64,000 nt of DNA, from sequence record LR756501.1. One strand, 5' to 3'. Below the pieces are notes generated by a model. It ran no database searches. It worked only from the letters and a program-made list of their open reading frames with translations, and was not told the DNA's origin. Both the position numbers and the translations under genes were made by a program. Of the stretch, positions 2,207-54,047 are shown piece after piece (the first letter of the stretch is position 1; each line of letters starts with the position of its first letter).

Positions 2207-3835
2207 ATGAAAAAAATGGAATTAAAAAATTTAACAGAATTTGAGCAATTTAGATTATTGATGAAGGAAAGTGTTTCAGGAACAGTGCGTTGCAGATTTG
2301 CCCCTTCACCTACCGGAGGCCTTCATATTGGGGGTGTTCGTACTGCTCTATATAATTATCTTTTCGCTAAGAAACATAACGGAGTATTTTACATTAGAAT
2401 TGAAGATACCGATCAAGGTAGATTCGTTTCAGGTGCAGAATCCTATATCCTTAAAGCTTTAGATTGGTGTGGTATTCATCACGAGGAAGGACCAGATGTT
2501 GGTGGACCTTACGCTCCTTACAGACAATCTGAAAGAAGTAATATCTATCCTAAATACGCTAAAGAGCTTATTGATAAAGGACACGCTTATTACTGTTTCG
2601 ATACACCAGATGATATTGAGAACATGAAAGCTAAATTGATCGAAAAAGGTGTACAATCACCTCAGTACGATCATATAACAAGAATGACCATGAAGAACTC
2701 GCTTACTCTAAAACCAGAGGAAGTAGAAGATTTAATGGCTAAAAAAGTTCCATTTGTAATTAGAGCAAAGTTCCCACCAGACGAGATTATAGTAGTCCAC
2801 GATATCATCAGAGGTAACGTTGAAGCTAACACGAATACTCTTGATGATAAAGTTCTATTCAAATCAGATGGTCTTCCAACATACCATTTAGCTAATATAG
2901 TTGACGACCATTTGATGAAAACAACTCACGTTATTCGTGGTGAAGAGTGGCTCCCAAGTGCTCCACTTCACGTATTTTTATACAAATCTTTAGGTTGGGA
3001 ACCACCTGAATTCGCTCACTTAGCCCTCCTACTTAACCCGGGCGGTCAAGGTAAACTATCGAAAAGAATGGGTGACGAATTAGGTTTCCCTATTTTCCCA
3101 TTAGCTTGGACTGATCCAAAGACTGGAAAAGAATCATTAGGTTATAAAGAAAAAGGTTATATACCTCAAGCTTTCATAAACTTCTTGGCTTTCTTAGGTT
3201 GGAATCCTGGCACAGAACAAGAAATGATGACTATGGACGAACTCATCCAATCATTCTCATTAGAGAGATGTGGTAAAGCTGGAGCCAAGTTTAATATTGA
3301 AAAAGCCAAATGGTATAACGGACAATATATGAAACAAATGTCTGACGAAGAAGTTACTGAACTTTTAAAACCTATTTTGAAAGAAAGAGGAATTGATCTT
3401 CCAGATAGAACCATAAAGAAAATGGTTGAAATGAATAAAGGTAAAGCTAACTTTATATCTGATATTTATGAGGCTTCACTATATTTATTTGAGCCACCAA
3501 AGGTCTATGACGAGAAAACAGTTGCTAAGAAATGGAATGATAAATGTCCTGCTCTTATGGCTCAAATAAAAGAAGCTTTGGCTCCTGTTCAAGATTGGAC
3601 ATCCGAAAGTATTCAAAAAGCATTTGAGGCTTATGTTAATCAAAATGGTTTGAATTTTGGTGAAATTTCAGCACCTTTAAGACTTGTTTTAACAGGTATG
3701 GGATTTGGACCTAATCTTTTTGATATTATGGAAATTATTGGTAAAGAAGGAACACTGGATCGTCTTACCAACTTCAAAATTAAAGCCAAGAAAAAGTTTG
3801 CACCTATGGTGTTACCTATTCCTGGAGCTGAATAA
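2207..3835 (+). CDS. gltX: Glutamyl-tRNA synthetase (class Ib) with short N-terminal extension
   Basis: RFAPSPTGGLHIGG (HIGH), RIEDTD, HVIRGEEW, KLSKR (KMSKS); resembles Bacteroidota GltX. Confidence 0.97.
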   Translation: MKKMELKNLTEFEQFRLLMKESVSGTVRCRFAPSPTGGLHIGGVRTALYNYLFAKKHNGVFYIRIEDTDQGRFVSGAESYILKALDWCGIHHEEGPDVGGPYAPYRQSERSNIYPKYAKELIDKGHAYYCFDTPDDIENMKAKLIEKGVQSPQYDHITRMTMKNSLTLKPEEVEDLMAKKVPFVIRAKFPPDEIIVVHDIIRGNVEANTNTLDDKVLFKSDGLPTYHLANIVDDHLMKTTHVIRGEEWLPSAPLHVFLYKSLGWEPPEFAHLALLLNPGGQGKLSKRMGDELGFPIFPLAWTDPKTGKESLGYKEKGYIPQAFINFLAFLGWNPGTEQEMMTMDELIQSFSLERCGKAGAKFNIEKAKWYNGQYMKQMSDEEVTELLKPILKERGIDLPDRTIKKMVEMNKGKANFISDIYEASLYLFEPPKVYDEKTVAKKWNDKCPALMAQIKEALAPVQDWTSESIQKAFEAYVNQNGLNFGEISAPLRLVLTGMGFGPNLFDIMEIIGKEGTLDRLTNFKIKAKKKFAPMVLPIPGAE

Positions 3836-3849
3836 AATAATATACGAAA

Positions 3850-4167
3850 ATGAAACACGTAGAAAAATTGAAATTAAACGAAGATTTTGGTCCTCAGAAT
3901 TGGCATAATCCATTCGATAAGAAGAATGATCCTTATGGTGAAGAGAAACCAGATCCAGTAAGACCACCATGTAAAATAGACGATAGTTTAATTGAAGCAG
4001 CTGGTCTTAAAAATTTGAAAGATCAAGTAGATGAATATATAACTAAACATGAAACTGGTGAGAGTTACGATGATAACGATTCAGATATGGAACATTATAT
4101 GTTTGAATCTGTAATGACCACTTTTTACGGTAGAGATATATGGAAATATCTACGTAAATTTGATTAA
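3850..4167 (+). CDS. Hypothetical protein, xNE leader + DPYGEE
   Basis: MKHVEKLKLNE; KNDPYGEEK. Confidence 0.75.
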   Translation: MKHVEKLKLNEDFGPQNWHNPFDKKNDPYGEEKPDPVRPPCKIDDSLIEAAGLKNLKDQVDEYITKHETGESYDDNDSDMEHYMFESVMTTFYGRDIWKYLRKFD

Positions 4168-4185
4168 TAAAATAAGTTAAATTAA

Positions 4186-4596
4186 ATGCCAAATAACATA
4201 ACAAAAGACTTCGAAGAATACAAACAGAAGAAAGTGGATAAGTTTAAGAAGGACAAAACCTTCGATCCACTTTCATCTGATATTGTAGCCTTGAGGGAAC
4301 TAGAAGACGGGAATATAGAAAAAGTTTCTGGACCGATTGAGATAATTCAAGTCACTGGCGTCATAACTGATAAAGATAGAATTGAAAAATTAGAAGAAGC
4401 CTCTGTTGTCGGACCTCAATTTAACGCTGATCTTGGTAATAAAGAAGTTAAAAGAGGTGACGTAATTTGGGTTACTGCTTTAGCACAAAGACCTGGCACT
4501 ACATCTTGGAACGCTCAACCATCTTATCACGTTTTAAAATGCCGTATTATGGATATTTTTTACGGTCTGAACAAACTAAAAACAATTGGAAAATAA
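4186..4596 (+). CDS. Hypothetical protein
   Basis: 136-aa ORF in operon context ending at a terminator. Confidence 0.7.
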   Translation: MPNNITKDFEEYKQKKVDKFKKDKTFDPLSSDIVALRELEDGNIEKVSGPIEIIQVTGVITDKDRIEKLEEASVVGPQFNADLGNKEVKRGDVIWVTALAQRPGTTSWNAQPSYHVLKCRIMDIFYGLNKLKTIGK

Positions 4597-4621
4597 AAAG
4601 TAAATTACTTACTTTATAGCA

Positions 4622-4657
4622 TAAAAAAAGATCCGATTCACTCGGATCTTTTTTTTA
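4622..4657. terminator. Bidirectional intrinsic terminator
   Basis: aagatccga-ttcac-tcggatctt hairpin with A and T tracts, between convergent genes. Confidence 0.85.
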
Positions 4658-4669
4658 TGATCGTTTCGA

Positions 4670-5185
4670 TTAATCTACATCTGGATCGACTTCTTCGGGT
4701 CCGTCAACTGTTTTACCCATTCCTTCCCAACCCGCTTCACCTTCTTCAGCGACTTCGACTGGTTTTATCTTATTCATTTCCCTAGACTTGGCTAATTCTT
4801 TATCTTCTAGTTCAAATCTATTTGGGAAGAACGTAAAAATCTTTTCAACGCCTGTTCCATCTGGTTCATTTTTAGAGATATGGCAACCAAGATCTAATTT
4901 ACCTTTATCATTTACTTTAATAACAGTAAATTTTTTATAGGTCATGAGAAAATCATAGGCGTCCATTGGTAACTTATTTGATTTCTTTGTATCCACAAGT
5001 ACAATGACGTCACCAACTTCAAAGTGTTTAAGTTCCTTTTCGGGTTTTCCGTCTTCGCCTTTACCTTTTTTACCTTTTTTTGGAGCTGGTACTGGTTCAT
5101 CTCCCCAATCGTCTCCACGTCCACCTGGTGCTTCTTCGTTGACTTTCTTCACTATTTTATCTTTTAAGAATTCTGTAAATTTCAT
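4670..5185 (-). CDS. Hypothetical protein, CTS-like leader, SH3-like core
   Basis: MKFTEFLKDKIVKKVNE; FEVGDVIVLVD. Confidence 0.75.
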   Translation of the reverse strand: MKFTEFLKDKIVKKVNEEAPGGRGDDWGDEPVPAPKKGKKGKGEDGKPEKELKHFEVGDVIVLVDTKKSNKLPMDAYDFLMTYKKFTVIKVNDKGKLDLGCHISKNEPDGTGVEKIFTFFPNRFELEDKELAKSREMNKIKPVEVAEEGEAGWEGMGKTVDGPEEVDPDVD

Positions 5186-5310
5186 ATCTCTTTTAATTCT
5201 TTTTTATGTACAAAGGTATATATTTTTAATAAAAAACCAAAATATTTCTAGATATATATTAAATTATAATTTTGGTTTTTTATATATAGCATAAAACAAA
5301 AAAGGTTTTT

Positions 5311-5883
5311 ATGGAAAAATTCACAAACGTTAAGAAGAACGAACCTAAAACAGAAGCCAACGAAGATCTCTTCAAGAACGACGAAATATCAATTATAAAG
5401 TTTGACGAGAAAGATATTATTATTAGTAACGCTCAAATAGTCATTCTACCTTATTTTAAAGACGAAGGCTTCTTCCTTCTTAAATACGAAAAATGTCCAG
5501 CCTTTAAATTCAAATATAAAGATAAATCAGAATATAACACACAAGACTACTATCTCACAAGTATTAAATCTGACTTTAATGACGATCAAACACCTACACA
5601 GAATGTTAGACGTATTCTACATGAAAAGACTGGAGTTGTTTTAAATCAACTATTTCCAATTGAAGTAGATAAAGTACTTTTCAAAGAAGATAATAACGTA
5701 GGACAATATCATATTTGTATATTACCAATAAACTATAACGATTATAAACAATCAAGTGTACAAGTAACAGAAGAAAATAGAGTTGTTAAGATTAGTCTTG
5801 GTGATATAGATAGTGTAAAAATATATGATTTGATTACAGATTACCTATTATTAAAGTTGAAATTTGAAAATAATATGAAATAA
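5311..5883 (+). CDS. Nudix-fold-like protein with degenerate Nudix box
   Basis: VILPY...DQTPTQNVRRILHEKTG resembles an eroded GX5EX7REUXEEXG. Confidence 0.45.
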   Translation: MEKFTNVKKNEPKTEANEDLFKNDEISIIKFDEKDIIISNAQIVILPYFKDEGFFLLKYEKCPAFKFKYKDKSEYNTQDYYLTSIKSDFNDDQTPTQNVRRILHEKTGVVLNQLFPIEVDKVLFKEDNNVGQYHICILPINYNDYKQSSVQVTEENRVVKISLGDIDSVKIYDLITDYLLLKLKFENNMK

Positions 5884-6341
5884 TGGATAAGTATAACAAT
5901 TTTATAAATGAAGCAGTTAACGAAGACGAATTTGCCGTAAAAAGATTAACCAATCTTGTAGATATGGCTATACCTTTATTTCATGAGGCAAGTCTAATAT
6001 ACCCAGCAATTAAAAAATATAAGAGGACAACAAAACTCACAACTGAACTAGGTGAGTCTTTAGTAAAAACATTTCCAAAACCAAAACCAAAAGCTGGCGA
6101 TTTAATACCTGGAAACATGTATGTTTACTCACCAGACGTTGATACAAAAATAGAATACACAAATGCTTATAATAAACAAAATGTTAGATTAATTGAAATT
6201 AGTACTCCAAGAAATTTTGAATATTGTGATTCAAAATATATAAAATGTTGTAATCATTTAGTAGAAGTAAAAGTAATGTACGGTGGACCAAGAAGATTCT
6301 GGACCAGGAAACATTGCCTTAAAACAATGAAAGCATATTAA
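5883..6341 (+). CDS. Hypothetical protein, CTS-like leader
   Basis: MDKYNNFINE. Confidence 0.75.
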   Translation: MDKYNNFINEAVNEDEFAVKRLTNLVDMAIPLFHEASLIYPAIKKYKRTTKLTTELGESLVKTFPKPKPKAGDLIPGNMYVYSPDVDTKIEYTNAYNKQNVRLIEISTPRNFEYCDSKYIKCCNHLVEVKVMYGGPRRFWTRKHCLKTMKAY

Positions 6342-6342
6342 T

Positions 6343-6531
6343 ATGGCAGAACAAGTAGATAGATACGAAGAAATCGTAAATGTTTTAATCCCTATACTGG
6401 ATGAAATGAATCATCTTAAAAAATATATGGACACTAAGACATTTAACGGAATAACAGACAAATTGAAAAAGTATATACAACAACCATCCAATCCACCACC
6501 AACAATTGGTACAGCAAAAATGTTTATGTGA
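6343..6531 (+). CDS. Small hypothetical protein
   Basis: 62-aa ORF tightly packed between neighbours. Confidence 0.6.
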   Translation: MAEQVDRYEEIVNVLIPILDEMNHLKKYMDTKTFNGITDKLKKYIQQPSNPPPTIGTAKMFM

Positions 6532-7169
6532 TGATAAAGAAATATATACAATTCATTAACGAAGCGTCCTCAGATATGTGGGACGACCTATATAAAAAAA
6601 TAGGTACAGATAAATATACTGAAAGTGTACCAGACCTATTAAATATAAATAGAATATCTGTTACTAAATCGGGCAAAGTGCTCGACGTTGGCGTCGGCGA
6701 CGGCTCTAATTCTAAATATTTTCTACAAAAAGGTTTTGATGTTTACGGTATAGACGTATCTAAAGTAGCCCTACAAAGAATGACCAACTATACCCAAAAA
6801 GGTCACTGGATCGAACACGACGTTACTAAAAAATTACCATTTGAAAATAAATTTTTCGATGTTATATTTTCAAGATTATCAATACATTACTTTGATGACG
6901 AACAAACTTCTGAAATTATAAAAGAATTTAGACGTGTAATTAAAGATGACGGTTTACTATTTATTTCAGTTAAAGTTGCTAATGTTGGTAATATTAATAC
7001 AGGTAAAGTCATGAGAACTAAAGATCAATGGGAAGAGATAATATCAGAATATTTTGGAATGATAGAAATGAATGAAGTTGTTAGAAAACCCTATGATTAC
7101 GATCCTGCTCCTTCTAATATGTTAGAGATATACGCTAAACCAGAACTTCGCCAGAAAATCCAACGTTAA
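6528..7169 (+). CDS. Class I SAM-dependent methyltransferase with CTS-like leader
   Basis: VLDVGVGDG motif I, GIDVS, FDVIFSRLSIHYF; MMIKKYIQFINE. Confidence 0.88.
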   Translation: MMIKKYIQFINEASSDMWDDLYKKIGTDKYTESVPDLLNINRISVTKSGKVLDVGVGDGSNSKYFLQKGFDVYGIDVSKVALQRMTNYTQKGHWIEHDVTKKLPFENKFFDVIFSRLSIHYFDDEQTSEIIKEFRRVIKDDGLLFISVKVANVGNINTGKVMRTKDQWEEIISEYFGMIEMNEVVRKPYDYDPAPSNMLEIYAKPELRQKIQR

Positions 7170-8506: not shown

Positions 8507-8844
8507 AAGTCCATTCTTTCTATTTGATCAATAGGTACATTTTTCACTACCCAGTGATTACCTCTTGCTCTTCTCACGTTTCTATATCTGGTATCTATTT
8601 TCAATACTATTGGATGATGAATGGCTGCTTCTTCTGGTGTTTCTGTTAAATATATTTCACCATTTAAACCATCTCTCATTATACTATCTATCGCTTCAAT
8701 TTCAACAGCGTGATATAAAAAATCTGGAACACCGTTACCATCAACGTCATTCTCATTATCTGCTGGATCTGGTTCGTCTTTAACTAAAAGTTTTTTCAGC
8801 CAANNNNNNNNNNNNNNNNNNNNNGTACAAGATTTAATTCTCAT
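8503..8844 (-). CDS. Putative ART/Tpt1-fold small protein (spans assembly gap)
   Basis: LYHAV...GL...IYLT pattern; N run at 8804-8824. Confidence 0.45.
   Translation of the reverse strand: MRIKSCXXXXXXXXWLKKLLVKDEPDPADNENDVDGNGVPDFLYHAVEIEAIDSIMRDGLNGEIYLTETPEEAAIHHPIVLKIDTRYRNVRRARGNHWVVKNVPIDQIERMDL
8804..8824. other. Assembly gap
   Basis: 21 N bases. Confidence 1.
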
Positions 8845-10979: not shown

Positions 10980-11988
10980 AACCAAAACGAAAATCAAAAC
11001 AAAACAATATGATTACCAAAAAACAAAACAAAACAAAATGGAAAAACAAATTGAATTGGGGTTATATAAAGTAACCCTCAGCGAAGAAGGATTAGTATTT
11101 ACTCCTAGGAGAGATATTATACCAAGGGAACAATGGAACACAAGATTGAACGCTACAGCAGGTGAAGTATGGTTAAAACCAGAATCAGTGAGTAAATTAA
11201 AAGATTGGTTAGATAATTCTGGATCAAGCGAACTCTATGGTGGTAAACAAATAGCCAAGAAAGAATACAAAGTTGACTACAAAGATAAGATGTACGTTGA
11301 AAAAAGAAAAATTCTACGTCAATTATCTATTAAAGACGAGATCAGGAATTGTCTTGATGTAGTTACAGATGAAATTTTTGATTGTATTATGTATAATTTT
11401 AGAAATTGTGCATATAAATCAATAAAAGATAGAATAGGAATAGAAATGAACGATCTTCATTTCTGGCATTATATAAGAACCTTTTTAGTTGATGGATTCT
11501 TAGCATTCGAAATCATATTTGACGGAGATAAACCCATCGATTTACACCCAGTAGATCCAAGCACTTTAGTGCCTCAATACGATCCAAAAACAAACAATAT
11601 GTTTTGGATTCAAAATCCAGATAAAGAAAGCGTGAAAAGAATATTAACAAATAAACAGATCATATATCTTGGATACTCTGGTAACGCTACTGAATTACAT
11701 ACTTCTTATGTAGAAGAACTCAAAGAATCATACGAAAGATTGAAAATGGCTGAAAGTTCAGTATTTTTTCCATCTGTGGATCCATCTATGAGACCTCCTA
11801 TTGAAGCTGTAAGATGGTTATACGAAGCATTTGAGAACATATCTAGGATTCCAAAATTACGCCCAGTTCAGTATAAAGTAGGAGAATGCTCTGAATCTGA
11901 TGTACTTAGGTACAATAAATTTATTGGAAGAATTGTGAAAATTTTTGATACAGAATTTTTCGATAAGATTAACTCGTTAAACAAATGA
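10960..11988 (+). CDS. Truncated T4 gp20-like portal paralog (probable start ~11038)
   Basis: RKILRQLSIKDEI..LDVVTDE, FLVDGFLAFEIIFD, SYVEEL resemble the N-terminal part of jumbo-phage portals (recalled, not searched). Confidence 0.6.
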   Translation: MKVILNKTKTKIKTKQYDYQKTKQNKMEKQIELGLYKVTLSEEGLVFTPRRDIIPREQWNTRLNATAGEVWLKPESVSKLKDWLDNSGSSELYGGKQIAKKEYKVDYKDKMYVEKRKILRQLSIKDEIRNCLDVVTDEIFDCIMYNFRNCAYKSIKDRIGIEMNDLHFWHYIRTFLVDGFLAFEIIFDGDKPIDLHPVDPSTLVPQYDPKTNNMFWIQNPDKESVKRILTNKQIIYLGYSGNATELHTSYVEELKESYERLKMAESSVFFPSVDPSMRPPIEAVRWLYEAFENISRIPKLRPVQYKVGECSESDVLRYNKFIGRIVKIFDTEFFDKINSLNK

Positions 11989-12173: not shown

Positions 12174-13301
12174 ATGTATAAGAAAATAAAATCACCTACC
12201 CCGATGTCTGGCTTTTACGTTGCCTACTACGGAAGCACTATGAACGAACGTAAAGGAATTTATGGAATATCACACCTTATGGAACACCTTGTCTGTAAAG
12301 GTATAGATAGTTTAATGGAAGATTTCGAAAGAGACGCTGTTAACTGGAACGCCTATACATCAGATAAGGAAATTGTTTTCTACATGACTGGTATGGATAA
12401 GAAAATTAAGAAATGGAAACAGAAATTTTACGAACACATTTTAAGCTTTGATCACGTTACAGAAGAAGTATTCCAAAACGAAAAGAAAATTGTTATAGAA
12501 GAATATAAAGATTCTTTTAATAAACAATCAGAAGCACACATGCAAAATCTTTTCAGAAAACTCTACGATTATTACGAAGCAATAGGTTTACTCGAAGATT
12601 TAGAAAGCTTAACTCTACAAGATTGTAAGGATTTCTTTGAATTACAATACAGAAAACCTACAATGATCATCGATATATCAAAGAGCACAGATACCAAAAT
12701 GGAAGAGTTCTTCTCTAAAGTGGAATACGATAAAAGAACATATAGCGATAATAGAATAGAACAAAATATCAACGAAAACTTCTTGTACGAAAAAGGAAAT
12801 AAATATAAAGATAAATCATCTATTATTAACCTTTCCCCAGTAATTTACGCTGATTTCCCATATATCACATTCATTAACAGAATGTTAGGTGCTGGTTTGA
12901 AATCGCCCATTTATAGAGAGATAAGGGAGAAGAACGGGTTAGTATATTATTTTCATTGTTACCAGAGAGAAATAACGAATAATTCTGTTGTGAGTATTTT
13001 ACAGACAGAAACTTCTAATAAGAATGTAGATAAGGTACAAAAGATATTAAAAGATATTTTAGGTAATCCTGATAAATATTTAACCAAAGAAAGGTTTGAT
13101 ATTATAAAGGAATATTACACTAATAAATACGAAAAGGAAAACATAATGCTTCATAACAACGGTTATAAGTTTATTGAGCAGGAACATTTCTCACTTGAGA
13201 AGATTTTACCAACTTTAACTTATGAAGACGTTAGAAGAGTATATGATAAATATTTTGATTTTTCTAAATTTTATCAATCAATAGATAAAAAAGAATTTTA
13301 A
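12174..13301 (+). CDS. M16-family (pitrilysin-like) zinc peptidase
   Basis: GISHLMEHL (HXXEH), NAYT, EKKIVIEE, YREIREKNGLVY. Confidence 0.92.
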   Translation: MYKKIKSPTPMSGFYVAYYGSTMNERKGIYGISHLMEHLVCKGIDSLMEDFERDAVNWNAYTSDKEIVFYMTGMDKKIKKWKQKFYEHILSFDHVTEEVFQNEKKIVIEEYKDSFNKQSEAHMQNLFRKLYDYYEAIGLLEDLESLTLQDCKDFFELQYRKPTMIIDISKSTDTKMEEFFSKVEYDKRTYSDNRIEQNINENFLYEKGNKYKDKSSIINLSPVIYADFPYITFINRMLGAGLKSPIYREIREKNGLVYYFHCYQREITNNSVVSILQTETSNKNVDKVQKILKDILGNPDKYLTKERFDIIKEYYTNKYEKENIMLHNNGYKFIEQEHFSLEKILPTLTYEDVRRVYDKYFDFSKFYQSIDKKEF

Positions 13302-13369: not shown

Positions 13370-14170
13370 ATGAAAATTAAAGATAAAAACGTGATACTGG
13401 ATCTATATAAAGAAAATTTATCACAGAAGGAAATATCTAAAAAATTGGGAATAACTCAAAGTTATGTCTCTAGAGTTATAAATCAATTTGGGTTAAAGAG
13501 AGATAAAAGTATTTTAAAACTAAATAGATTAGGTATAGATTTAGATTATTTTAAATGTATTGATAATGATGAAAAATCTTATTGGTTAGGTTTTATTTGT
13601 GCTGATGGCAACATTAACAAAAATGATAATAAAATGACTTTAACATCAAAAGATTTGGAAATAATTGAAAAATTTAAAAAATGTATAAAATCTGATCATC
13701 AAATAAATCATTATGAATATTTAGATAAAAGAACCAATAGAAGATATAAAAGACACACTATACAAATTACGACAAAACCTTTTACAACTAATCTAATAAA
13801 TCTAGGTGTGACTAAATACAAAACTGATAAGCTAGATTTTCCTAGCATAGATGAAAAATATATACATAGTTTTATTGCTGGATTATTTGACGGTGATGGC
13901 ACAATCTGTAATAGAAAAAAGAATAAACAATTATTACTCAGTTTAATATCTACTATGGAAATGTTAAATTTTATTCAAAATTATTTAGATAAGAATTTCA
14001 ATATAAATCGCACAGAAATTCAAAGAGTTACAAAAAGAAAAAATAATGTTTATAAAATGCCTTTATATAAAAGAGAAGATATACTTAAATTTTTAAATTT
14101 TATTTATAGTGGCAACAGTGATATGTATTTACAAAGAAAATATAACACATATAAAAAAGAAATAGTCTAA
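13370..14170 (+). CDS. LAGLIDADG homing endonuclease with N-terminal HTH
   Basis: YWLGFICADG and FIAGLFDGDG motifs. Confidence 0.9.
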   Translation: MKIKDKNVILDLYKENLSQKEISKKLGITQSYVSRVINQFGLKRDKSILKLNRLGIDLDYFKCIDNDEKSYWLGFICADGNINKNDNKMTLTSKDLEIIEKFKKCIKSDHQINHYEYLDKRTNRRYKRHTIQITTKPFTTNLINLGVTKYKTDKLDFPSIDEKYIHSFIAGLFDGDGTICNRKKNKQLLLSLISTMEMLNFIQNYLDKNFNINRTEIQRVTKRKNNVYKMPLYKREDILKFLNFIYSGNSDMYLQRKYNTYKKEIV

Positions 14171-14171
14171 T

Positions 14172-14525
14172 ATGGAAAATAAAGTCGTGTTCCTTGATAT
14201 AGATGGTTGTTTAGTCAAACATCACGGTGGACATTCATCTTCACTAATATCCCAGAAGACCCAACTTTTACCTGGTGTAAAAGAAAAATTAGATGAGTGG
14301 GAAGTAGCTGGATGCCAAATAATTATAACAACTGGTAGAAAAGAATCTTACAGAAAGTTTACTGAGGATCAGTTATTTAAAGCGGGTGTAGCTTACGAAC
14401 AGTTGGTGATGGGATTAGGTAGAGGAGAGAGAATTGTTATTAATGATAAAAAACCTGATGGTACACCGACGGCTAGGGCTATAATGGTAGATAGAAATGA
14501 AGGAATAGGAGGAATTGAGTTATGA
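14172..14525 (+). CDS. HAD-superfamily phosphatase
   Basis: VFLDIDGCL, ITTGR, INDKK. Confidence 0.85.
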   Translation: MENKVVFLDIDGCLVKHHGGHSSSLISQKTQLLPGVKEKLDEWEVAGCQIIITTGRKESYRKFTEDQLFKAGVAYEQLVMGLGRGERIVINDKKPDGTPTARAIMVDRNEGIGGIEL

Positions 14526-14827
14526 TATTAACACCGTTATTTGTAAAAAATTCTATTGATAATTATAACAATAAGATGAATAAGGATCGTGAGCAACAAG
14601 CAATACTTGTCGGTAAGATTAATGCTGCAGCTAATATTATAGCTAAATCTGGAAGAAGAGTGGGGGCAGCTAGTTATATAAATGGAGAATATATCAAAGA
14701 TTTATGTATGCCATTTACAAGGGAGTTAGATCCTAAAACAAATACATGGAGAGATTATAAACCAAAGGAAGTGAAAAGGATAGTATCTGCTTTAGATCCT
14801 TACGGTGAAGAAAATTGGGAGAACTAA
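14522..14827 (+). CDS. Small protein resembling a major-capsid-protein segment, C-terminal DPYGEENW
   Basis: KINAAANIIAKSGRRVGAASY resembles the gp23-like ILAAANxIAxRGRRG segment. Confidence 0.55.
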   Translation: MILTPLFVKNSIDNYNNKMNKDREQQAILVGKINAAANIIAKSGRRVGAASYINGEYIKDLCMPFTRELDPKTNTWRDYKPKEVKRIVSALDPYGEENWEN

Positions 14828-14830
14828 ATT

Positions 14831-15067
14831 ATGATAGGCAGAAAAGGAATAGAACAGGGTTACGTATATCTTCCATATAGATTGGAACAAACTGTTCCTA
14901 TAATAGTGGAAGGGAGATTTGCACCAAAAATGCTTCTTAAAAGTAGGTATAGCATGGTTGTTCCAAATGAAGGATTTTTTCAGAAGATTTCATCTGGAAT
15001 TAAAAAAGAAATAGTAAGAGTCTTTTCTGATTTAGATCCTTACGGCGAGGAAGATTGGAATAATTAA
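14831..15067 (+). CDS. Small protein resembling the major-capsid-protein C-terminal segment, C-terminal DPYGEEDW
   Basis: GYVYLPY...EGRFAPKMLLKSRY resembles T4 gp23 GIYYAPY...QPVMGFKTRY. Confidence 0.6.
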   Translation: MIGRKGIEQGYVYLPYRLEQTVPIIVEGRFAPKMLLKSRYSMVVPNEGFFQKISSGIKKEIVRVFSDLDPYGEEDWNN

Positions 15068-23802: not shown

Positions 23803-26800
23803 TCACTTAAATTCCTCATATGATTTTTTAACAATTTCAGCTAGTTCCTCTTTACTCATAAAAGGATCATCAAGGTACATTTCACCGAGAACCTTTAATA
23901 TCTTACCAACTATCGGTCCTTTTTTTATACCCAATATATCCATTACGTCGTCACCGCTCAACGGTGATTTTGGAGGAGCGGTCTTATCCTTTTCCTCTAA
24001 CTCTGCAAACCTTCTCCTTATATTAGATACCTGGTTTGGCATATTAGAGTCATCTGAGTGTGATACGTTATCAGCGTGTATCACATCAAGAGTGTGTTGA
24101 AGATGTGGACCTAAATCCTGTTTCATCTTTCTTAACGACCTATCACTTATAACACCTTCATCACCAGTCTGTTTTGTTCTCATGTGATGTTCGACAGCAG
24201 TTGCCACAGCGTCAATTATATCACTGGGGTACCTTAATCTTTTCATTATATCCCTAGCCATAAAAGCACCCAACTCTTCGTGTCTGTAAAAATGTACTTC
24301 ATTATCTATTATTTCTCTAGCCTTAGACTTACCTACGTCGTGTAAAAGAGCAGATAATCTTGTAACTAAATCAGGTGGAGTATTCTTTAACACTTCCAAA
24401 GTGTGACGCATAGCGTCGTACTTATGAAACTTATTCTGTTTCATCTTGATAAGTTTATCAAGCTCAGGAAAAATATATTTAGATAATCCTAATATTTGCA
24501 ATAATCTAATTGCCTTATCTGGAGTTTTAGTTAGAAGCATTTTATCTAATTCTTCTCTTATCCTTTCGGAAGAAATGTTTTGTAATTTCTTAGCGTTTCT
24601 CTTTAAACTCCTTATCATAAAGAGTGGCAACTTCCAACCGTATTTTGTTGCAAATCTTACAGCCCTTAACATTCTTAAAGGATCATCCGTGAAAATAACA
24701 TCAGGATCAAGTGGTGTTCTAACTATACCAGCCTTGATATCATCCTTACCCATACCTGTTAAATCTAATATTTCGTCAGTAGATAAATCTTTTAAAAGCG
24801 AATTTACGGAAAAATCGCGACGAAAAACATCATCTTTCAATGTCCCTTGTGATACATCTGGTTTACGATCCCCTTCAAAATATGTTTCCTTTCTTGGCAT
24901 AACACATTCAATATCAATATCTGATAAGTCTTCACCGTTGAATTTTTGTCTTCTAAGTGAGAATTTAGCTGTGCCGAATCTAGGGTATATAACAGGGTTT
25001 CCTTTTGTGTGTATTCCTAATTCTTTTGTAATCCAATCTGCGAATTTGATTCCACCGTCGGGAACGTTTATAAGTAGGTCAACGTCTTTAGGATCGTTGC
25101 CCATAAGTTCGTCGCGTACGGCTCCACCAGCAATAAAAACTTTGCCTTCCCATTCAGTTCCTTTGATAGTTTGTTTTATCAATCCTACTGCTGCTTTTAC
25201 TTTTTCTGGTGTTATTGCTTCATTTAACATATTATGATTTTCTTGTATTATTTTCTTTTTAACTTTTCCAGAACGCGAAGATAGTGAAAATTTTTCATTT
25301 ACTCCGTATAAACCAGTGATTTTACTTTCTCCTCTTTCTCCCCATCCCATGTCTTTATCATTATTTTTAAAATGATAAGTGACTACATATTCTTGTTCAA
25401 CTGGTTCTTCTGGTTCATCGTCTTCCACATTAAATTCATCGTCATGGTACTGGTGAGGCCAAAATGGATTTTCATATCTTTCAACGTATTTTGGTTTTAC
25501 TTCTCTAATTATAGCGTATAATTGTTTATCACCAAATTCGACTTTATCTCCCACTTTATATTTTGGTTCTTCCCAATCTTCTTCACCATATGGATCTAAT
25601 TCATCTACATTTTCATTTACACCGTTTTTTTCTAATCTATCTTCATCCATTAAACCATAACCTAAATATCTGTGTGAATTTTTAAAATAATAATCAACAG
25701 TATATTCTCTTTTATATGGATCGAATTCTTTAATAATAGCGTATTTATCGTGACTAATATTGATCTTATCACCATTTTTATATTTAGGTCCATCTTCCCA
25801 TCTTTCTTCGCCATAAGGATCTAATTCGTCTAATTCTACTGGTTCGTATTTTTTAAAAGCCCACTCTGAATACCACCCTGGAAAACCTTTGATAGAAATA
25901 CCAGATTTACTTATACCAGATACTTCGTAATTATTATATCTACTGAAAATAGTACTGCCAGCAATAACGAAATCTTTATCAACCCTAACTATATCTCCAA
26001 CTTTAATTTCATTATCTACATTCTCTCCCAACCAGTCTTCTTCTCCATATGGGTCATTGGGATTAAAAACTCTTGGTAATGGATTGTTAGTGAAATATTC
26101 TCTCATTTCATCTAAATTAAATTGCAGTGCACTTGCGTTATTACTAGCAACAAAGAATTTTTTATCTTTTATACTATAACCAGTTATAACATATCCTTTA
26201 CCTCTTGTGAAACAATCTCCAAAATTGGCTTTTAGAGTTTTTTTACATATTATTTTACTAGACACTTTAAAATCTTCTAAAGATTCATCCACATTTTCAT
26301 TCAATGCTCCTATTCTCCTCATTATTTCTCTTGCTCTTTTACTACCACCTTTAGGATAATTCATCATAGAATTATATCTACCCTTATCATATGCTATATC
26401 CTGTCCTTCAAATTGTCCTGCTGTTGGATCTAATATTTCACCTTTACTGTCTCTCATAAACCAATGGGTTTCACCTTCGTCAAGTCCTTCAGGCCAAGAA
26501 AGATGACTTAATACATAAGTTTTCCAATCACTGGATGGACCTCCAAGCATCCAATAAAGAGCTTCTGTAGCAGCGTAACAATGTCCTGCTAATGGATTAT
26601 CAAACTCTTTATTCCACATACCTTTCAAAAGATCTTTAGTTAAGACTGATTGAATCTTTTTTATCAAATTATCGTACTCAAAATTTTCTTTTAAGAGACC
26701 GATCTTATAATCACCTATAAGATATTTCAATCTATCTTGATGTATTTGTCCCTTCTTAAATAATTGAGAATCTTCTATACATTCATCTATTGTTCTAGGA

Positions 26801-27504
26801 TTCCAACGATCTGGTAAAGGTACAAAAATATGTTGAATATTAAATTTCTTAAAATAAGGAATACATAACTTACAGGTAAATTGTGTCTTAAAGAACAATG
26901 TTCCTGTTTTTGGAAAATAACCAGCTACATAAATATCTGCACCATCTATATTATAACCTTTAGCAAGGGCATCATTCATTGCTTCAACCTCGGCGTGATT
27001 AGCGTATCCTTGTTTAAGTATTCTATCCAATTTGAATTTAGCGTGAGCAATACCTCTATTATAACCTTCCCCAAGTATCTCGCCACCCTTAACTAAAACT
27101 GCTCCGTATCTTTCAGAATCACTTTTACATTTACGAGCGTTAGTTAAACATATTTTATAGTAAGGATCTTTTATTATAGAAGCAGCCGATTCATTTACTT
27201 CCCAATCTTCTTCACCGTAAGGATCTTCTGCTGTGAATTTTCTTACCCTTTTTCTACCCATTCTTAATCTATCAGTCGAACACCAATAAGAGGAACTAGT
27301 CCCGTCAAGGCCTTCCCCGTCGTGTAAAAGATCAGACCACATGTTATCAAATAAAACTAAAATCGAATTACCATCGTCTTCAACTTGTGTTACTACACCA
27401 GGTTCCCAAGCGTCTACTCTATCGTAATCGATGTATTCTACTCTGTCTCCGATTTCGAAACCAGTTAAATCGTTATATTCAAATAATTTAAATTTAGTTA
27501 TCAC
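23803..27504 (-). CDS. 1233-aa polyprotein: SH3-like modules, 4 DPYGEE tags, CMP/dCMP-type deaminase, HC..H..D domain, CCA tRNA nucleotidyltransferase + HD domain
   Basis: GTG start MITKFKLFE; HAEVEA..CKLC; GGAVRD..KDVDL, RRDFSVN, LRMLRAVRF, LLHDVGK. Confidence 0.9.
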   Translation of the reverse strand: MITKFKLFEYNDLTGFEIGDRVEYIDYDRVDAWEPGVVTQVEDDGNSILVLFDNMWSDLLHDGEGLDGTSSSYWCSTDRLRMGRKRVRKFTAEDPYGEEDWEVNESAASIIKDPYYKICLTNARKCKSDSERYGAVLVKGGEILGEGYNRGIAHAKFKLDRILKQGYANHAEVEAMNDALAKGYNIDGADIYVAGYFPKTGTLFFKTQFTCKLCIPYFKKFNIQHIFVPLPDRWNPRTIDECIEDSQLFKKGQIHQDRLKYLIGDYKIGLLKENFEYDNLIKKIQSVLTKDLLKGMWNKEFDNPLAGHCYAATEALYWMLGGPSSDWKTYVLSHLSWPEGLDEGETHWFMRDSKGEILDPTAGQFEGQDIAYDKGRYNSMMNYPKGGSKRAREIMRRIGALNENVDESLEDFKVSSKIICKKTLKANFGDCFTRGKGYVITGYSIKDKKFFVASNNASALQFNLDEMREYFTNNPLPRVFNPNDPYGEEDWLGENVDNEIKVGDIVRVDKDFVIAGSTIFSRYNNYEVSGISKSGISIKGFPGWYSEWAFKKYEPVELDELDPYGEERWEDGPKYKNGDKINISHDKYAIIKEFDPYKREYTVDYYFKNSHRYLGYGLMDEDRLEKNGVNENVDELDPYGEEDWEEPKYKVGDKVEFGDKQLYAIIREVKPKYVERYENPFWPHQYHDDEFNVEDDEPEEPVEQEYVVTYHFKNNDKDMGWGERGESKITGLYGVNEKFSLSSRSGKVKKKIIQENHNMLNEAITPEKVKAAVGLIKQTIKGTEWEGKVFIAGGAVRDELMGNDPKDVDLLINVPDGGIKFADWITKELGIHTKGNPVIYPRFGTAKFSLRRQKFNGEDLSDIDIECVMPRKETYFEGDRKPDVSQGTLKDDVFRRDFSVNSLLKDLSTDEILDLTGMGKDDIKAGIVRTPLDPDVIFTDDPLRMLRAVRFATKYGWKLPLFMIRSLKRNAKKLQNISSERIREELDKMLLTKTPDKAIRLLQILGLSKYIFPELDKLIKMKQNKFHKYDAMRHTLEVLKNTPPDLVTRLSALLHDVGKSKAREIIDNEVHFYRHEELGAFMARDIMKRLRYPSDIIDAVATAVEHHMRTKQTGDEGVISDRSLRKMKQDLGPHLQHTLDVIHADNVSHSDDSNMPNQVSNIRRRFAELEEKDKTAPPKSPLSGDDVMDILGIKKGPIVGKILKVLGEMYLDDPFMSKEELAEIVKKSYEEFK

Positions 27505-47255: not shown

Positions 47256-48563
47256 TTAATCTTTCACTACAATTTGTTTAGCGTTTCCTACTACTTTACA
47301 TTTATCGTGATGACTTATAATCATGCATTTTTTCAAAAGAGTTACATTCAATTCATCAGTCATACCGTCAGTTAATATCAACGTATTCATTTTATTAATC
47401 TTTTTATTAGAAGCTATAAAATTAATACCAGTTTGTAAGGTGGTTCCACCTAATCCAAATATTGCTAATTTTCTAAACTCCGCTTTACTCCTAATCACTT
47501 TGAAATCCTTTACCTCTGTATCACATTGAACTAGATTAATTCTTATACCGTTTTGAAAAATATAAGATAAAGATTTCTCAAAATATCCTTCCATACTACC
47601 AGACACATCCAACATCACATTAAGAGCGTAAGATTCTTTCCTTTTACCTTTAACACCAGGAATACTTCTTCTATTCCTTTTAGTCATAGACTTTTGTTTG
47701 AAATTACCAAATAACTCGTTTATACCAATTTTTATATCTTTAATATAATCTTTCTTTGATTTAGTAATTTTATCAAGAGTTGCTTGTATATCACCTGTAA
47801 GTAATCCTCTGTTCTTCAGTGCGTTCTTCACGTTCTCAATTATACTTTTTCTATATTCTGCTGGTAAATCACAAGGTAAATGGCAGTCTAAAAATTCACA
47901 TAATCCCAATTCTAATTGATCAAATATCCTTCTAAGATAATCACTTACTGGACAATCTGGACAACTACATGGTGCCTTACCGTGCATTCTGTTACATTTA
48001 CATTCTAAATCTTTATCACACTGGCAGTTAGCTTTCCATTCGTCGTACTTTTGTTTTTCAATTATTATCCATTCGTACATTTCTTCAAAAGAAAGTGTAC
48101 CTTTATATTCCTCTGGTTTATGAAGAACCCAAACTTTATTAGTTTCTCTATCGATGGGTATTTCGGCGAATCTAAGGTTTCTTTTATTGATTTTGTTATG
48201 TTGATTCATTTTATCAACGATATCTGTCTTGATAACGTCGTTAATGATCATATCTTGTACGACGTTACTAAGTTCGTGATCGTAACCACATCTTCTTGTT
48301 CTAGCTTGGTGGTCCCAAAGTAGGTGGAATATTTCGTGTAACATAATGAAATTCATTTCTTCTTGGGTAAGAGTATCAATAAACTCTTCGTTGAAATAGA
48401 ATCTCATTCCGTGAATATCAACTGTAACACCACATGTCTTGATATTTTGGAATTTCTTAAAATTTATGAATTGGCAGAACTCTCCGTAATATTGAAGTCC
48501 TAACATAGCGTCAGAAATCATTACGTCAACAGAGTTAATTATTTTTTGATGATTTTCAGCCAT
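47256..48563 (-). CDS. Metallopeptidase-like + VWA domain protein (DUF2201-like)
   Basis: HEIFH (HEXXH); DVSGSM MIDAS, GGGT-like GLGGT, LTDG. Confidence 0.88.
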   Translation of the reverse strand: MAENHQKIINSVDVMISDAMLGLQYYGEFCQFINFKKFQNIKTCGVTVDIHGMRFYFNEEFIDTLTQEEMNFIMLHEIFHLLWDHQARTRRCGYDHELSNVVQDMIINDVIKTDIVDKMNQHNKINKRNLRFAEIPIDRETNKVWVLHKPEEYKGTLSFEEMYEWIIIEKQKYDEWKANCQCDKDLECKCNRMHGKAPCSCPDCPVSDYLRRIFDQLELGLCEFLDCHLPCDLPAEYRKSIIENVKNALKNRGLLTGDIQATLDKITKSKKDYIKDIKIGINELFGNFKQKSMTKRNRRSIPGVKGKRKESYALNVMLDVSGSMEGYFEKSLSYIFQNGIRINLVQCDTEVKDFKVIRSKAEFRKLAIFGLGGTTLQTGINFIASNKKINKMNTLILTDGMTDELNVTLLKKCMIISHHDKCKVVGNAKQIVVKD

Positions 48564-51809: not shown

Positions 51810-52001
51810 TTAATCTACCTCCCTAAATCTTTTTATTATTCTCTTAAGCTCCTTATAAGCTTTATCTTTAGTTGATTCTTTTACAACAAGTCTTTCATTT
51901 AGTTTCAGATATGCTGTAAAAGAATCTTCTAAAGTGTTTTGAATGTATATAATGTTACCTAACTTCTCATCGTTTTCTTCTGTTACTCTTATATAATTCA
52001 T
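51810..52001 (-). CDS. Small hypothetical protein
   Basis: 63-aa ORF in operon. Confidence 0.6.
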   Translation of the reverse strand: MNYIRVTEENDEKLGNIIYIQNTLEDSFTAYLKLNERLVVKESTKDKAYKELKRIIKRFREVD

Positions 52002-52019
52002 TAATTTATATATTTATTT

Positions 52020-54047
52020 TTAAACCTCCATTCTTTCGTAATGCGAAAATGTTAAATTATTTATCGCTCTCCCCTGTGATAAAGTTCTTAAAGTTGTTAT
52101 AAACCCAAACTTCTCAGATAAAGGCGATTTAACCTTTAATATCACAGTTGAATCAGCTAAAGTATCTATTGATACTACCTGCGAACGACGCCTATTCAAC
52201 TCTCCTATTATATTACTTAAATATTCTTCTGGTGTCGCAACTTCTTCATCCATAATTGGTTCCAATAAAACTGGATTGCCTTTCATGTAAGCTGTTGGAA
52301 ATGAAAGTTTAACACAAGTTTCAAAAGCCAACGGACTAGAATCCACAACGTGAATTGCTCCGTCTATAATAGTTACTTTCAAACTTTCAATTTCATTACC
52401 AGCTAAAGGTCCGCTAACCATACAATCTTTGAAAGCTTTTTCAATAGTTGGCATATATTCTCTTGGAATATTTCCACCTTTGACTTCGTTAACAAAGATT
52501 AAACCTTTAGTATCATCAAGAACTGGCTCCATTCTATATTCGATTTCAGCAAACATACCTTTACCACCAGTTTGTCTTGATAATCTTTCTCTATGTGTTA
52601 CTGGTCTTGTAATAGTTTCTCTATAAGAAACTTTAGGTTGACCAGTATTACAATCAACGTTAAATTCAGTTCCTAATCTACTAACTATAACATCAAGATA
52701 GAGTTCACCCATTCCACTAACAACAGTTTGTCCGTTTTCATCAACCTTTACAGAGAAAGTGGGATCTTCTTCAGCCAATTTTTGTAAAGCAAATCCTAAT
52801 TTATCGTTATCTTTATTAGTTAAAGGTTCAATAGTAATTGATATAACCGGTTTAGCATTTGTTATACTTTCAAGTGTAAAGACGTTCTTATCTCCACATA
52901 AAGTATCACCTGTCCAAATATCTTTCATACCAACTATTGCACAAATATCACCAGCACTAGCCGATTTAATATCTGACTTTTTATCAGCCTGAATTGAGAA
53001 CAATCTTGATATTCTCTCAGCCTTTTTAGTTCTAGCGTTGTAAATAGTCTGTCCAACTTTAATAGTGCCAGAGTAAATTCTAATCATAGATAATTTACCA
53101 GCGTTCTTATCAGACATTATCTTAAACACAAGAGCAGATAAAACTTCATTTTCATTTGTTTTAATTTCTATATCTTCTTCGTCTTTCACTGCTGAAATTG
53201 TACTTCTATCCATTGGTGAAGGAAGAAAATTTACAACCGCGTCCAGTAAAGTTTGTACTCCTTTATTTTTCTTAGCTGTTCCACATAAAACTGGAACTAC
53301 TTTAAAATCAAGAGTTAACTTGCGAATTTTATTGAATATATCTTCTTTGGTTATTGTTTCTATTGCTTCAAAATATTGATGCATGAAATCACTATCGTAA
53401 TCACAAATAGTTTCAAGTATTTGTTCGTGATAGTATATTGCGTTAACCAAATATTCTTCTGGTATTTCAGATACTTCGTATTCTTCGCCTAACGTTTCAC
53501 TATTCCAAGTGATATATTTCATATTGATTAAATCAATAACTCCTTTGAAATTATCTTCACTACCAACAGGTAATTGTATAATAAGAGGTTTTGATTTTAA
53601 TCTATTTTCAATTTGTTCAACAACTTTAAAGAAATCAGCACCAGTTCTATCCATTTTATTAATGAAAGCGATTCTTGGAACTTTATATCTATTAGCTTGA
53701 CGCCAAACTGTTTCAGATTGTGGTTGTACACCGCCAACACCACAGAACACTACAACTGCACCATCTAATATTCTAAGTGAACGTTCTACTTCACCAGTAA
53801 AATCAATATGTCCAGGAGTATCTATAATTGTAATTTTATGATCGTTCCATTCGCAAGTAACTGCAGCAGACATAATTGTAATGCCTCTTTCTCTTTCTTG
53901 TGGCATGGAATCTGTGGTTGTATTACCGTCGTGGACTTCGCCCATTTTATGATTTTGTCCAGTATAATACAATACGCGCTCAGTCAACGTGGTTTTACCA
54001 GCGTCGATGTGTGCTATAATTCCTATATTTCTATTTTTTAAGTTCAT
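52020..54047 (-). CDS. fusA: Elongation factor G
   Basis: [35 protein letters not shown], domain V. Confidence 0.97.

Follow-up and report, generated by a model that had tools for sequence, protein, structure and literature searches.

Two conserved mini-genes of a huge phage are tagged pieces of its own capsid protein: evidence that suggests a protein-addressing system

Why should a phage with a complete major capsid protein (MCP) gene also carry, tens of kilobases away, two very small adjacent genes that resemble pieces of that protein and that both end in the same short peptide? We asked this of a 64,000 bp stretch of DNA (here called the window) that is identical to bases 131061-195060 of LR756501.1 (and of LR756503.1), an unannotated 735,411 bp "uncultured phage" record that has the size of the largest genome reported in "Clades of huge phages" (PMC7162821). 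The 21 masked bases of the window (8804-8824) were kept as N throughout. An earlier note, made from the sequence alone, had pointed out the two mini-genes, their resemblance to major capsid protein fragments and their DPYGEExW endings, and had proposed that they are capsid-derived fragments reused as tagged proteins, either as decoys for capsid-sensing defences or as assembly adaptors, that would link the tag to the capsid. We find below that what the note saw in the sequence is real, and that its interpretation is supported only in part.

Two mini-genes colinear with the major capsid protein

The features of the locus, and those elsewhere in the genome that are discussed below, are collected in Table 1. 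Both open reading frames, ORF1 and ORF2, are present as the note described, and both end in LDPYGEE[ND]WxN-stop. One detail of the tail pattern that it gave for both is not correct, since K-x-I-V-x5-L fits ORF2 (KEIVRVFSDL), but ORF1 reads KRIVSAL, which is three residues shorter. The two T4 gp23 strings that the note cited do occur in the order it gave in the solved gp23 sequence when this is aligned to the MCP of this phage.

Table 1. Coordinates of the mini-genes, their parts and neighbors (window numbering) and of related genes elsewhere in LR756501.1 (record numbering)
Numbering	Position	Strand	Feature	Remarks
window	12174-13301	+	M16 peptidase	HxxEH motif present; conserved upstream neighbor
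window	13370-14170	+	LAGLIDADG endonuclease	conserved upstream neighbor
window	14172-14525	+	HAD-like phosphatase	conserved upstream neighbor
window	14522-14827	+	ORF1, 101 aa	start overlaps the stop of the HAD-phosphatase gene (ATGA); N-terminal long helix (predicted), then MCP-like segment, then tag
window	14597-14680	+	ORF1 residues 26-53 (QAILVGKINAAANIIAKSGRRVGAASYI)	homologous to MCP residues 458-484; counterpart of T4 gp23 EIARQTGRGEGNF
window	14759-14824	+	ORF1 tag, KPKEVKRIVSAL-DPYGEENW-EN	in the position of the MCP hairpin IAIYV-DPYMRW-DDN
window	14825-14833	+	junction TAA-ATT-ATG	ORF1 and ORF2 in the same frame here
window	14831-15067	+	ORF2, 78 aa	MCP C-terminal piece plus tag; stop followed one base later by the ATG of the FkbM methyltransferase gene
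window	14834-14980	+	ORF2 residues 2-50 (IGRKG..GYVYLPY..FAPKMLLKSRY..GFF)	homologous to MCP residues 542-590; counterpart of T4 gp23 GIYYAPY..FQPVMGFKTRY
window	14996-15064	+	ORF2 tag, GIKKEIVRVFSDL-DPYGEEDW-NN	upstream half predicted helical (low confidence)
record	73913-76336		prohead protease-scaffold fusion gene	precedes the MCP gene
record	76340-78166		MCP, 608 aa	54 kb upstream of the window; follows a portal gene and a prohead protease-scaffold fusion gene
record	11314-11850		prohead protease piece	tagged
record	619760-620383		prohead protease piece	tagged
record	48028-48549		portal piece	tagged
record	553796-554236		tail sheath piece	tagged
record	554941-555297		tail sheath piece	tagged
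record	552409-552918		MCP piece	tagged
record	497197-498567		MCP piece (part of this gene)	tagged
record	542326-542892		MCP piece	untagged
record	276342-276932		MCP piece	untagged
record	730457-730711		MCP piece	untagged
record	565330-565899		MCP piece	untagged
record	564998-565333		MCP piece	untagged

The alignment to gp23-family profiles, the absence of which the note had said would refute its idea, and to the phage's own MCP gave the following results. The MCP itself scores 82.9 bits against the Pfam Gp23 family (PF07068) and aligns with solved T4 gp23. ORF2 residues 4-45 match positions 310-351 of the Gp23 profile at 21.0 bits (E 2.5e-4), which is just below the 24.4-bit gathering threshold, ORF1 has no hit, and the six-frame match across both ORFs scores 20.5 bits, so that neither mini-protein qualifies as a family member by that criterion. 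The homology of ORF2 to a bona fide gp23-type MCP is nevertheless statistically real, since blastp against the phage's own MCP gives E 7e-10 and a profile-profile comparison (hhalign) of the 34-member ORF2 family with MCP residues 548-588 gives a probability of 97% (E 8e-11). The evidence for ORF1 alone is weaker (blastp E 2e-4 over 28 residues; hhalign probability 44%, E 2.4e-4), and its assignment is supported by colinearity: when the two ORFs are read through with X at the stop, they align as a single high-scoring segment with MCP residues 458-590, at 36% identity over 138 positions (E 2e-15). In addition, the DNA distance from the DPY codon to the G of the GRK motif is 39 nt in the MCP and 40-42 nt in the three mini-gene loci.

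Are these functional genes or debris? Database searches found ORF2 orthologs of 78-79 aa at 74-86% identity and ORF1 orthologs at 55-70% (70% and 55% for two orthologs). Two independent contigs, L169 and L170/L171, keep the gene order M16 peptidase, (LAGLIDADG), HAD, ORF1 slot, ORF2, but their two ORFs are in different frames (TAA-T-ATG in L169 and TAA-AT-ATG in L170), so the split is old and readthrough is not the mode of expression. The ORFs are intact in three lineages in spite of these different relative frames, and dN/dS is 0.17-0.28 for ORF2 at dS 0.5-0.9 and 0.39 for ORF1 (against L169), which is not what is expected of pseudogene fragments under relaxed selection. In L170 the ORF1 slot holds an unrelated tagged protein, so ORF2 does not need ORF1. 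Contigs from other freshwater samples, including one from an independent freshwater run, cover the junction without any difference, whereas no RNA run contained the locus, and the one metatranscriptome from a sample that contains the locus had none of it. A profile search of 1.84 billion representative sequences found about 35 clusters (at 50% identity) of ORF2-like mini-proteins of 56-94 aa in metagenomes, which share the core GKKG..GY[VI][YFW]xPY..[IV][IV]..FxPK..[LI][KR]SRY. The shared ATGATAGG start of ORF2 and of the next gene is a coincidence, since L169 has ATGATAAA there.

Structure prediction added little. AlphaFold2 models made from 4-sequence alignments have low confidence for both proteins (pLDDT 61 for ORF1 and 40 for ORF2) and show no confident fold, so only their secondary structure was used, with caution: a helix is predicted at ORF1 residues 5-46 (pLDDT 77-89 over the first 30 residues) and, at low confidence, at ORF2 residues 55-68. 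A search of the ESM Atlas was uninformative, as all scores were below the useful range and the Atlas model has a pLDDT of 0.40.

A peptide tag found throughout the proteome

The DPYGEE sequence occurs 109 times in the genome, always in long ORFs (94 of about 1000), and 18 of these copies are in the window; a W follows at +2 in 103 copies. The DNA pattern is expected by chance about 1e-4 times in 735 kb and is found 103 times, and scrambled versions of DPYGEE occur 0 times. All six residues are invariant while the third positions of every tag codon vary, so a DNA-level repeat or mobile cassette does not by itself explain the tag. However, CCT (67% against 34% genome-wide) and TAC (71% against 35%) are over-used, which points to common DNA ancestry plus selection on the peptide. 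Of the 109 copies, 41 are at the extreme C-terminus (28 of them end exactly two residues after the W), 21 lie within 30 residues of the N-terminus and 47 are internal, with up to four copies per protein in linkers between domains here and 12 in a 1537-aa relative. The C-terminal consensus is K-E-[IG]-K-R-[VI]-[FY]-[ST]-x-L-DPYGEE-[ND]-W-[DEN]-[DENK]-stop. The pattern is abundant in IMG/VR contigs (261 copies in 120 loci, with only 8 variant spellings), but was not found in five other huge phages, including three relatives of 634-642 kb and Lak-A1. In 596 Gb of prokaryotic genomes there were 72 single hits against about 69 expected by chance, and a host origin or host use of the tag is rejected on this basis.

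Most of the tagged proteins are small and of no recognized family, but some are enzymes, including a 1233-aa deaminase/CCA-adding enzyme fusion in the window, a GNAT acetyltransferase, methyltransferases and a phosphoribosyltransferase. A distinct subset are pieces of virion proteins. The genome contains about 19 small genes that are pieces of MCP, portal, prohead protease-scaffold or tail sheath, and about 8 of them are tagged (Table 1). One of the untagged MCP pieces, a 188-aa MCP-like protein (record 542326-542892), lacks exactly the segment that ORF2 represents. Small tagged genes are enriched for being fragments of larger proteins (9 of 72 against 25 of 622, p = 0.005), and in the IMG/VR loci 18 of 204 tagged ORFs are such pieces. 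In L170 the ORF2 ortholog is the second gene in an array of nine consecutive tagged mini-genes, most of them MCP pieces, whose identifiable parts cover MCP residues 543-590, about 40-65, 164-325, 563-580 plus 366-405, 46-148 and 331-411, plus a sheath piece. The small K-[VI]-G-D-x-V domains that often follow tags, and that might be imagined to be the tag receptor, have no significant Pfam support for an SH3/Tudor-like identity. The neighboring M16 peptidase is not a tag-specific enzyme, since its orthologs at 40-52% identity occur in three phages without the tag.

Piece and tag are separate modules. Phages without DPYGEE also have MCP-piece mini-genes, and one of these, the sister phage LR745206, has a 75-aa ORF2 equivalent that ends in ...LIRKRKIENIFKIENPTD. 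This phage has its own proteome-wide C-terminal tag (RDxKIxxIL, or more generally R-[DEN]-x-K-[IL]-x-x-[ILF]), which lies within the last 10 residues of 103 genes (103 of 131 copies) and occurs in 130 of 931 genes overall, while a shuffled control gave no C-terminal copies and LR756501 has none either. Its ORF2 equivalent and other MCP and protease pieces carry that tag. Among the ORF2-like proteins the same core occurs with a C-terminal DPYGEE or DPFGEE tag, with the tag at the N-terminus, with RKxKIExIF-type tails, or with no tail at all. The KKEIVRVFSDL part of the DPYGEE tag, which is the part predicted to be helical, aligns with the RKxKIExIF tails of lineages without DPYGEE. The origin of the tag is ambiguous. 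In ORF1 it replaces the MCP hairpin VDPYMRWDDN at the same DNA spacing, which could suggest that it arose from that hairpin, but the tag tails of ORF2 homologs align with the older RKxKIExIF-x-I-E-x-P-T-E tails of other lineages, which favors elaboration of an older tail.

Possible roles of the capsid pieces and their tag

The above observations establish that ORF1 and ORF2 are two separate, evolutionarily conserved small genes that descend from a duplicated copy of the C-terminal third of the phage's own gp23-type MCP (residues about 458-590 of 608), cut exactly at the MCP hairpin, that each half ends in the lineage's tag, a short basic, hydrophobic and probably helical stretch (K-E-I-K-R-V-F-S-x-L) followed by DPYGEExW, and that the pair belongs to a clade-wide class of mini-proteins made of one piece of a self-assembling virion protein plus the tag; what these proteins bind and what they do is, on the other hand, inferred from sequence alone. 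By analogy with T4 gp23 and the HK97 fold, the duplicated region corresponds to the A-domain helices and strands plus the last P-domain strand. Fragments of self-assembling proteins often keep one interface, and we infer that the MCP-derived piece may retain a surface that binds the parent MCP or an MCP-binding partner. A short invariant peptide that occurs at either end of or inside unrelated proteins, is lineage-specific and is at chance level in cellular genomes is best explained as a position-independent docking peptide for one common phage-encoded receptor that would co-evolve with it. The most likely purpose of such docking would be delivery to the assembling head, in the manner of the T4 capsid targeting sequence or of encapsulin cargo peptides, in which case the mini-proteins would act as tagged adaptors or internal components in head morphogenesis. 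We hold this explanation with moderate confidence, as only somewhat more likely than not.

Head targeting is suggested by the T4-type portal, protease and MCP module of this phage, by the about 83 genes that start with MI-K-K-F-K-L-F-E (MKYLKKFNE in LR745206), a motif that resembles the T4 capsid targeting sequence MKTYQEFIAE and ends in a T4-protease-like I/L-x-E, and by the fact that in this genome the DPYGEE extension follows both that N-terminal motif and the C-terminal helix. Several facts do not sit easily with it. About 10% of the proteome, including tRNA and nucleotide enzymes, would have to share the receptor, which is many proteins for a head cargo; tail-sheath pieces do not fit a purely head-directed role; and the link to the targeting sequence is inconsistent, because the N-terminal motif and the C-terminal tag exclude each other in LR745206 but co-occur here. 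Against the explanation as a whole also stand the unrelated tagged protein in the ORF1 slot of L170 and the ORF2-like proteins that have no tail. The note's expectation that the tag is linked to the capsid is not supported as stated, as the tag also sits on the enzymes listed above and on dozens of unknown proteins. Of its two proposed functions, the adaptor reading fits the modular piece-plus-tag anatomy and the decoy reading is not excluded.

The closest comparisons are with four systems. T4 gp24, in the gp23/gp24 capsid and vertex family, is a full-length paralog that forms pentamers, while the mini-proteins represent only part of the MCP, split over two proteins that cannot form an HK97 fold alone, and carry an added tag. 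The T4 capsid targeting sequence of internal proteins IPI-III is also a short peptide shared by otherwise unrelated proteins and is sufficient to address cargo to the scaffold core (PMC3012670), but it is N-terminal, about 10 aa long and removed by gp21, whereas DPYGEExW is acidic, invariant and found at C-terminal, N-terminal and internal positions; the tags of ORF1 and ORF2 are C-terminal, and neither ORF starts with the MI-KKF-x-F-E motif. The cargo-loading peptides of encapsulins (whose shells are HK97-fold) and the encapsulation peptides of microcompartments are short terminal peptides, often amphipathic helices on a linker, at either end of unrelated cargo proteins, that bind the inside of a protein shell. 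The tag occurs on unrelated proteins and at either end of the same core, with a helix predicted only at low confidence, but there is no sequence similarity, the tags here are also internal and multi-copy, and the putative cargo includes pieces of the shell protein itself. Finally, the C-terminal tethering pentapeptide NWETF of chemoreceptors is an acidic, Trp-containing peptide at the extreme C-terminus on a flexible linker that docks a partner enzyme; its form is similar to ...EENWEN-stop, but the system and sequence context are unrelated and this is an analogy of principle only.

Other explanations seem less likely to us. The tagged pieces could be decoys or inhibitors that mimic the part of a virion protein recognized by a bacterial immune sensor and block that sensor, with the tag serving to package and deliver them or to recruit a neutralizing factor. 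The pieces do come from conserved virion proteins, the class of phage protein that bacterial sensors recognize, T-even internal proteins that carry the capsid targeting sequence are described as a diverse set of anti-defence proteins (PMC3012670), and sheath pieces fit this idea better than a role in head assembly; however, no sensor is known for these phages, isolated capsid fragments can activate sensors as well as block them, and a decoy needs no tag. We regard it as unlikely, though it is the strongest of the alternatives. Somewhat less likely still, the tag could be mainly a processing or module-boundary signal, such as a protease site between the domains of polyproteins, with mini-genes that end in it being simply "pre-cut" modules and the tag having no docking role. 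The internal tags in linkers, the interchange of "tag-stop-start" and "tag-linker" arrangements between relatives and the uniform distance of many C-terminal tags from the stop agree with this, but cutting a C-terminal tag would remove only 2-5 residues, the tag can be N-terminal on the same core, the sister lineage's tag is almost only C-terminal, the M16 peptidase is not specific to tagged phages, and the tag does not match the T4-type (L/I)xE site.

That the MCP pieces are assembly poisons or timers, which cap MCP interfaces to delay the phage's own assembly or to sabotage the capsids of co-infecting relatives, appears improbable; all the parent proteins are polymers, but the sequences share only 36-40% identity with the phage's own MCP, there is no evidence of co-infection or timing, and the tag is not explained. 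A decaying remnant of a duplicated MCP gene split by a nonsense mutation, or a single protein made by stop-codon readthrough, might be imagined because in this window the two ORFs are in the same frame and separated only by TAA-ATT, but these readings are contradicted by the different frames in relatives, the dN/dS values well below 1, the intact tags, the widespread ORF2 family and the presence of the stop in contigs from independent samples.

Implications for huge phages

Literature searches for the motif, for the phage clade and for targeting peptides in huge phages found no description of the tag or of tagged virion-protein fragments in the paper library searched. The broadest reading of our findings, which we consider possible but tentative, is that the largest known phages run a proteome-wide addressing system in which a lineage-specific peptide tag (DPYGEExW here, RDxKIxxIL in the sister lineage) co-evolves with an unknown phage-encoded receptor, and that they have evolved a family of "piece-plus-tag" adaptors by cutting their own self-assembling virion proteins (capsid, portal, protease-scaffold and sheath) into modules that link the parent structures, or host sensors of them, to that receptor.

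Huge phages (over 500 kb) are known only from metagenomes, and most of their genes have no assigned function. A single invariant peptide on about 10% of the proteins sorts roughly a hundred unknown proteins into one functional class, a sister lineage has a different but equivalent tag, and the tag gives an experimental handle, as a peptide for pull-downs and as a fusion for localization or encapsidation. If the tag addresses proteins to the head, it defines the ejected-protein arsenal of the largest known phages and would be a natural cargo-loading tag for very large capsids. Conserved mini-genes that are tagged pieces of capsid, portal, protease and sheath are, as far as the searched literature shows, an undescribed way of re-using structural proteins, and they bear on how giant capsids are assembled, or on how phages deal with immunity that senses structural proteins.

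Copies of the tag and other recurrent peptide motifs

The DPYGEE peptide is present in 18 copies in the window, distributed over 14 ORFs, and three of these copies (at 1546, 3928 and 17662) lack the W at +2. Four DPYGEExW tags are found in the linkers of a single 1233-aa fusion protein, which consists of a small beta-barrel-like N-terminal domain, a cytidine/dCMP-type deaminase, three further small barrel-like modules and a CCA-adding enzyme with an HD domain. At two places where the tag occurs, public short-read assemblies were found to break or branch at the tag copies, and the loose ends there belong to other tag-bearing genes; the tag therefore acts as an assembly repeat.

The sister huge phage LR745206 has no DPYGEE but has a C-terminal tag of its own, R-[DEN]-x-K-[IL]-x-x-[ILF]-(0-10 aa)-stop, on 103 genes; the median length of the 71 genes that match a stricter form of this tag is 107 aa. 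A second proteome-wide motif occurs at N-termini in both phages and reads M-I-K-K-F-K-L-F-E-N-E in about 83 genes of LR756501 and M-K-Y-L-K-K-F-N-E in about 83 genes of LR745206. This motif resembles the T4 capsid targeting sequence MKTYQEFIAE, but its relationship to the C-terminal tag differs between the two genomes: in LR745206 the two exclude one another (1 co-occurrence, p = 7.5e-4), while in LR756501 they co-occur.

Locations of the features in the window, in the complete LR756501 record and in related sequences
Location	Strand	Feature
Window 62, 906, 948, 1188, 1546, 1874, 3928, 14795, 15035, 17662		DPYGEE copies
Window 8155, 25596-27225 (four copies), 28467, 45070, 45464	-	DPYGEE copies
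Window 23803-27504	-	Deaminase/CCA-adding enzyme fusion protein
Window 525-, 1495-, 1820- (examples; whole record LR756501 and LR745206)		N-terminal motif
LR745206.1, whole genome		C-terminal tag of the sister phage
L170 (JGI 3300027896 contig) 3648-6829; same array in L143		Array of tagged mini-genes
Record 552.1-556.0 kb		Nine tagged small genes in a row
Record 276342-276932	-	Mini-MCP
Record 565330-565899	+	Mini-MCP
LR745206 291407-291880		Mini-MCP
LR756502 about 315.7-316.1 kb		Mini-MCP
Record 542326-542892 (homologs in L070 and L080)	+	188-aa MCP-like protein
Window 13370-14170	+	LAGLIDADG homing endonuclease
Window 12174-13301	+	M16 peptidase
Record 51925-53034		M16 peptidase paralog
Record 73913-76336	+	Prohead protease-scaffold fusion
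Window 14788-14834 and 15032-15067		Breaks or branches in public short-read assemblies
Window 8804-8824		Run of 21 N (masked), kept as N in the analysis

Genes near the mini-gene locus and the prohead protease fusion

The M16 (insulinase-type) peptidase has an intact HxxEH motif and a 36%-identical paralog elsewhere in the record, with which it could form a heterodimer; orthologs exist in phages without the tag. Between the peptidase and the HAD gene lies a LAGLIDADG homing-endonuclease gene with an N-terminal HTH, which is present in the related contig L170 but absent from L169 (another contig with the same neighbourhood), so it is a mobile insertion next to the mini-gene locus. The prohead protease of this phage is fused to a long scaffold-like region that has about 15 repeats of a motif roughly 17 aa long (..Y.EYIAE.LD.SI..), a Q/A-rich linker and a small barrel-like domain (VVKIDDDKTGEILAM..).

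Mini-genes made of virion protein pieces

The L170 array comprises nine consecutive tagged mini-genes that are separated from one another by a stop plus 1-3 nt plus ATG; most of them are MCP pieces and one is a tail-sheath piece. In LR756501 the equivalents are dispersed, as for example in the row of nine tagged small genes listed in the table. Proteins of 157-196 aa, which we call "mini-MCPs", join the MCP N-terminal region (KWxPILDAL...), the spine-helix region and, in some cases, the last P-domain strand, while skipping the A-domain. They are conserved across lineages and are untagged here. In addition, a 188-aa protein is made up of an N-terminal coiled-coil-like part, MCP 435-543 and the last MCP strand. 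It lacks exactly the segment (543-592) that is represented by ORF2, the second of the two tagged mini-genes, so complementation between the two, inferred from sequence alone, is possible.
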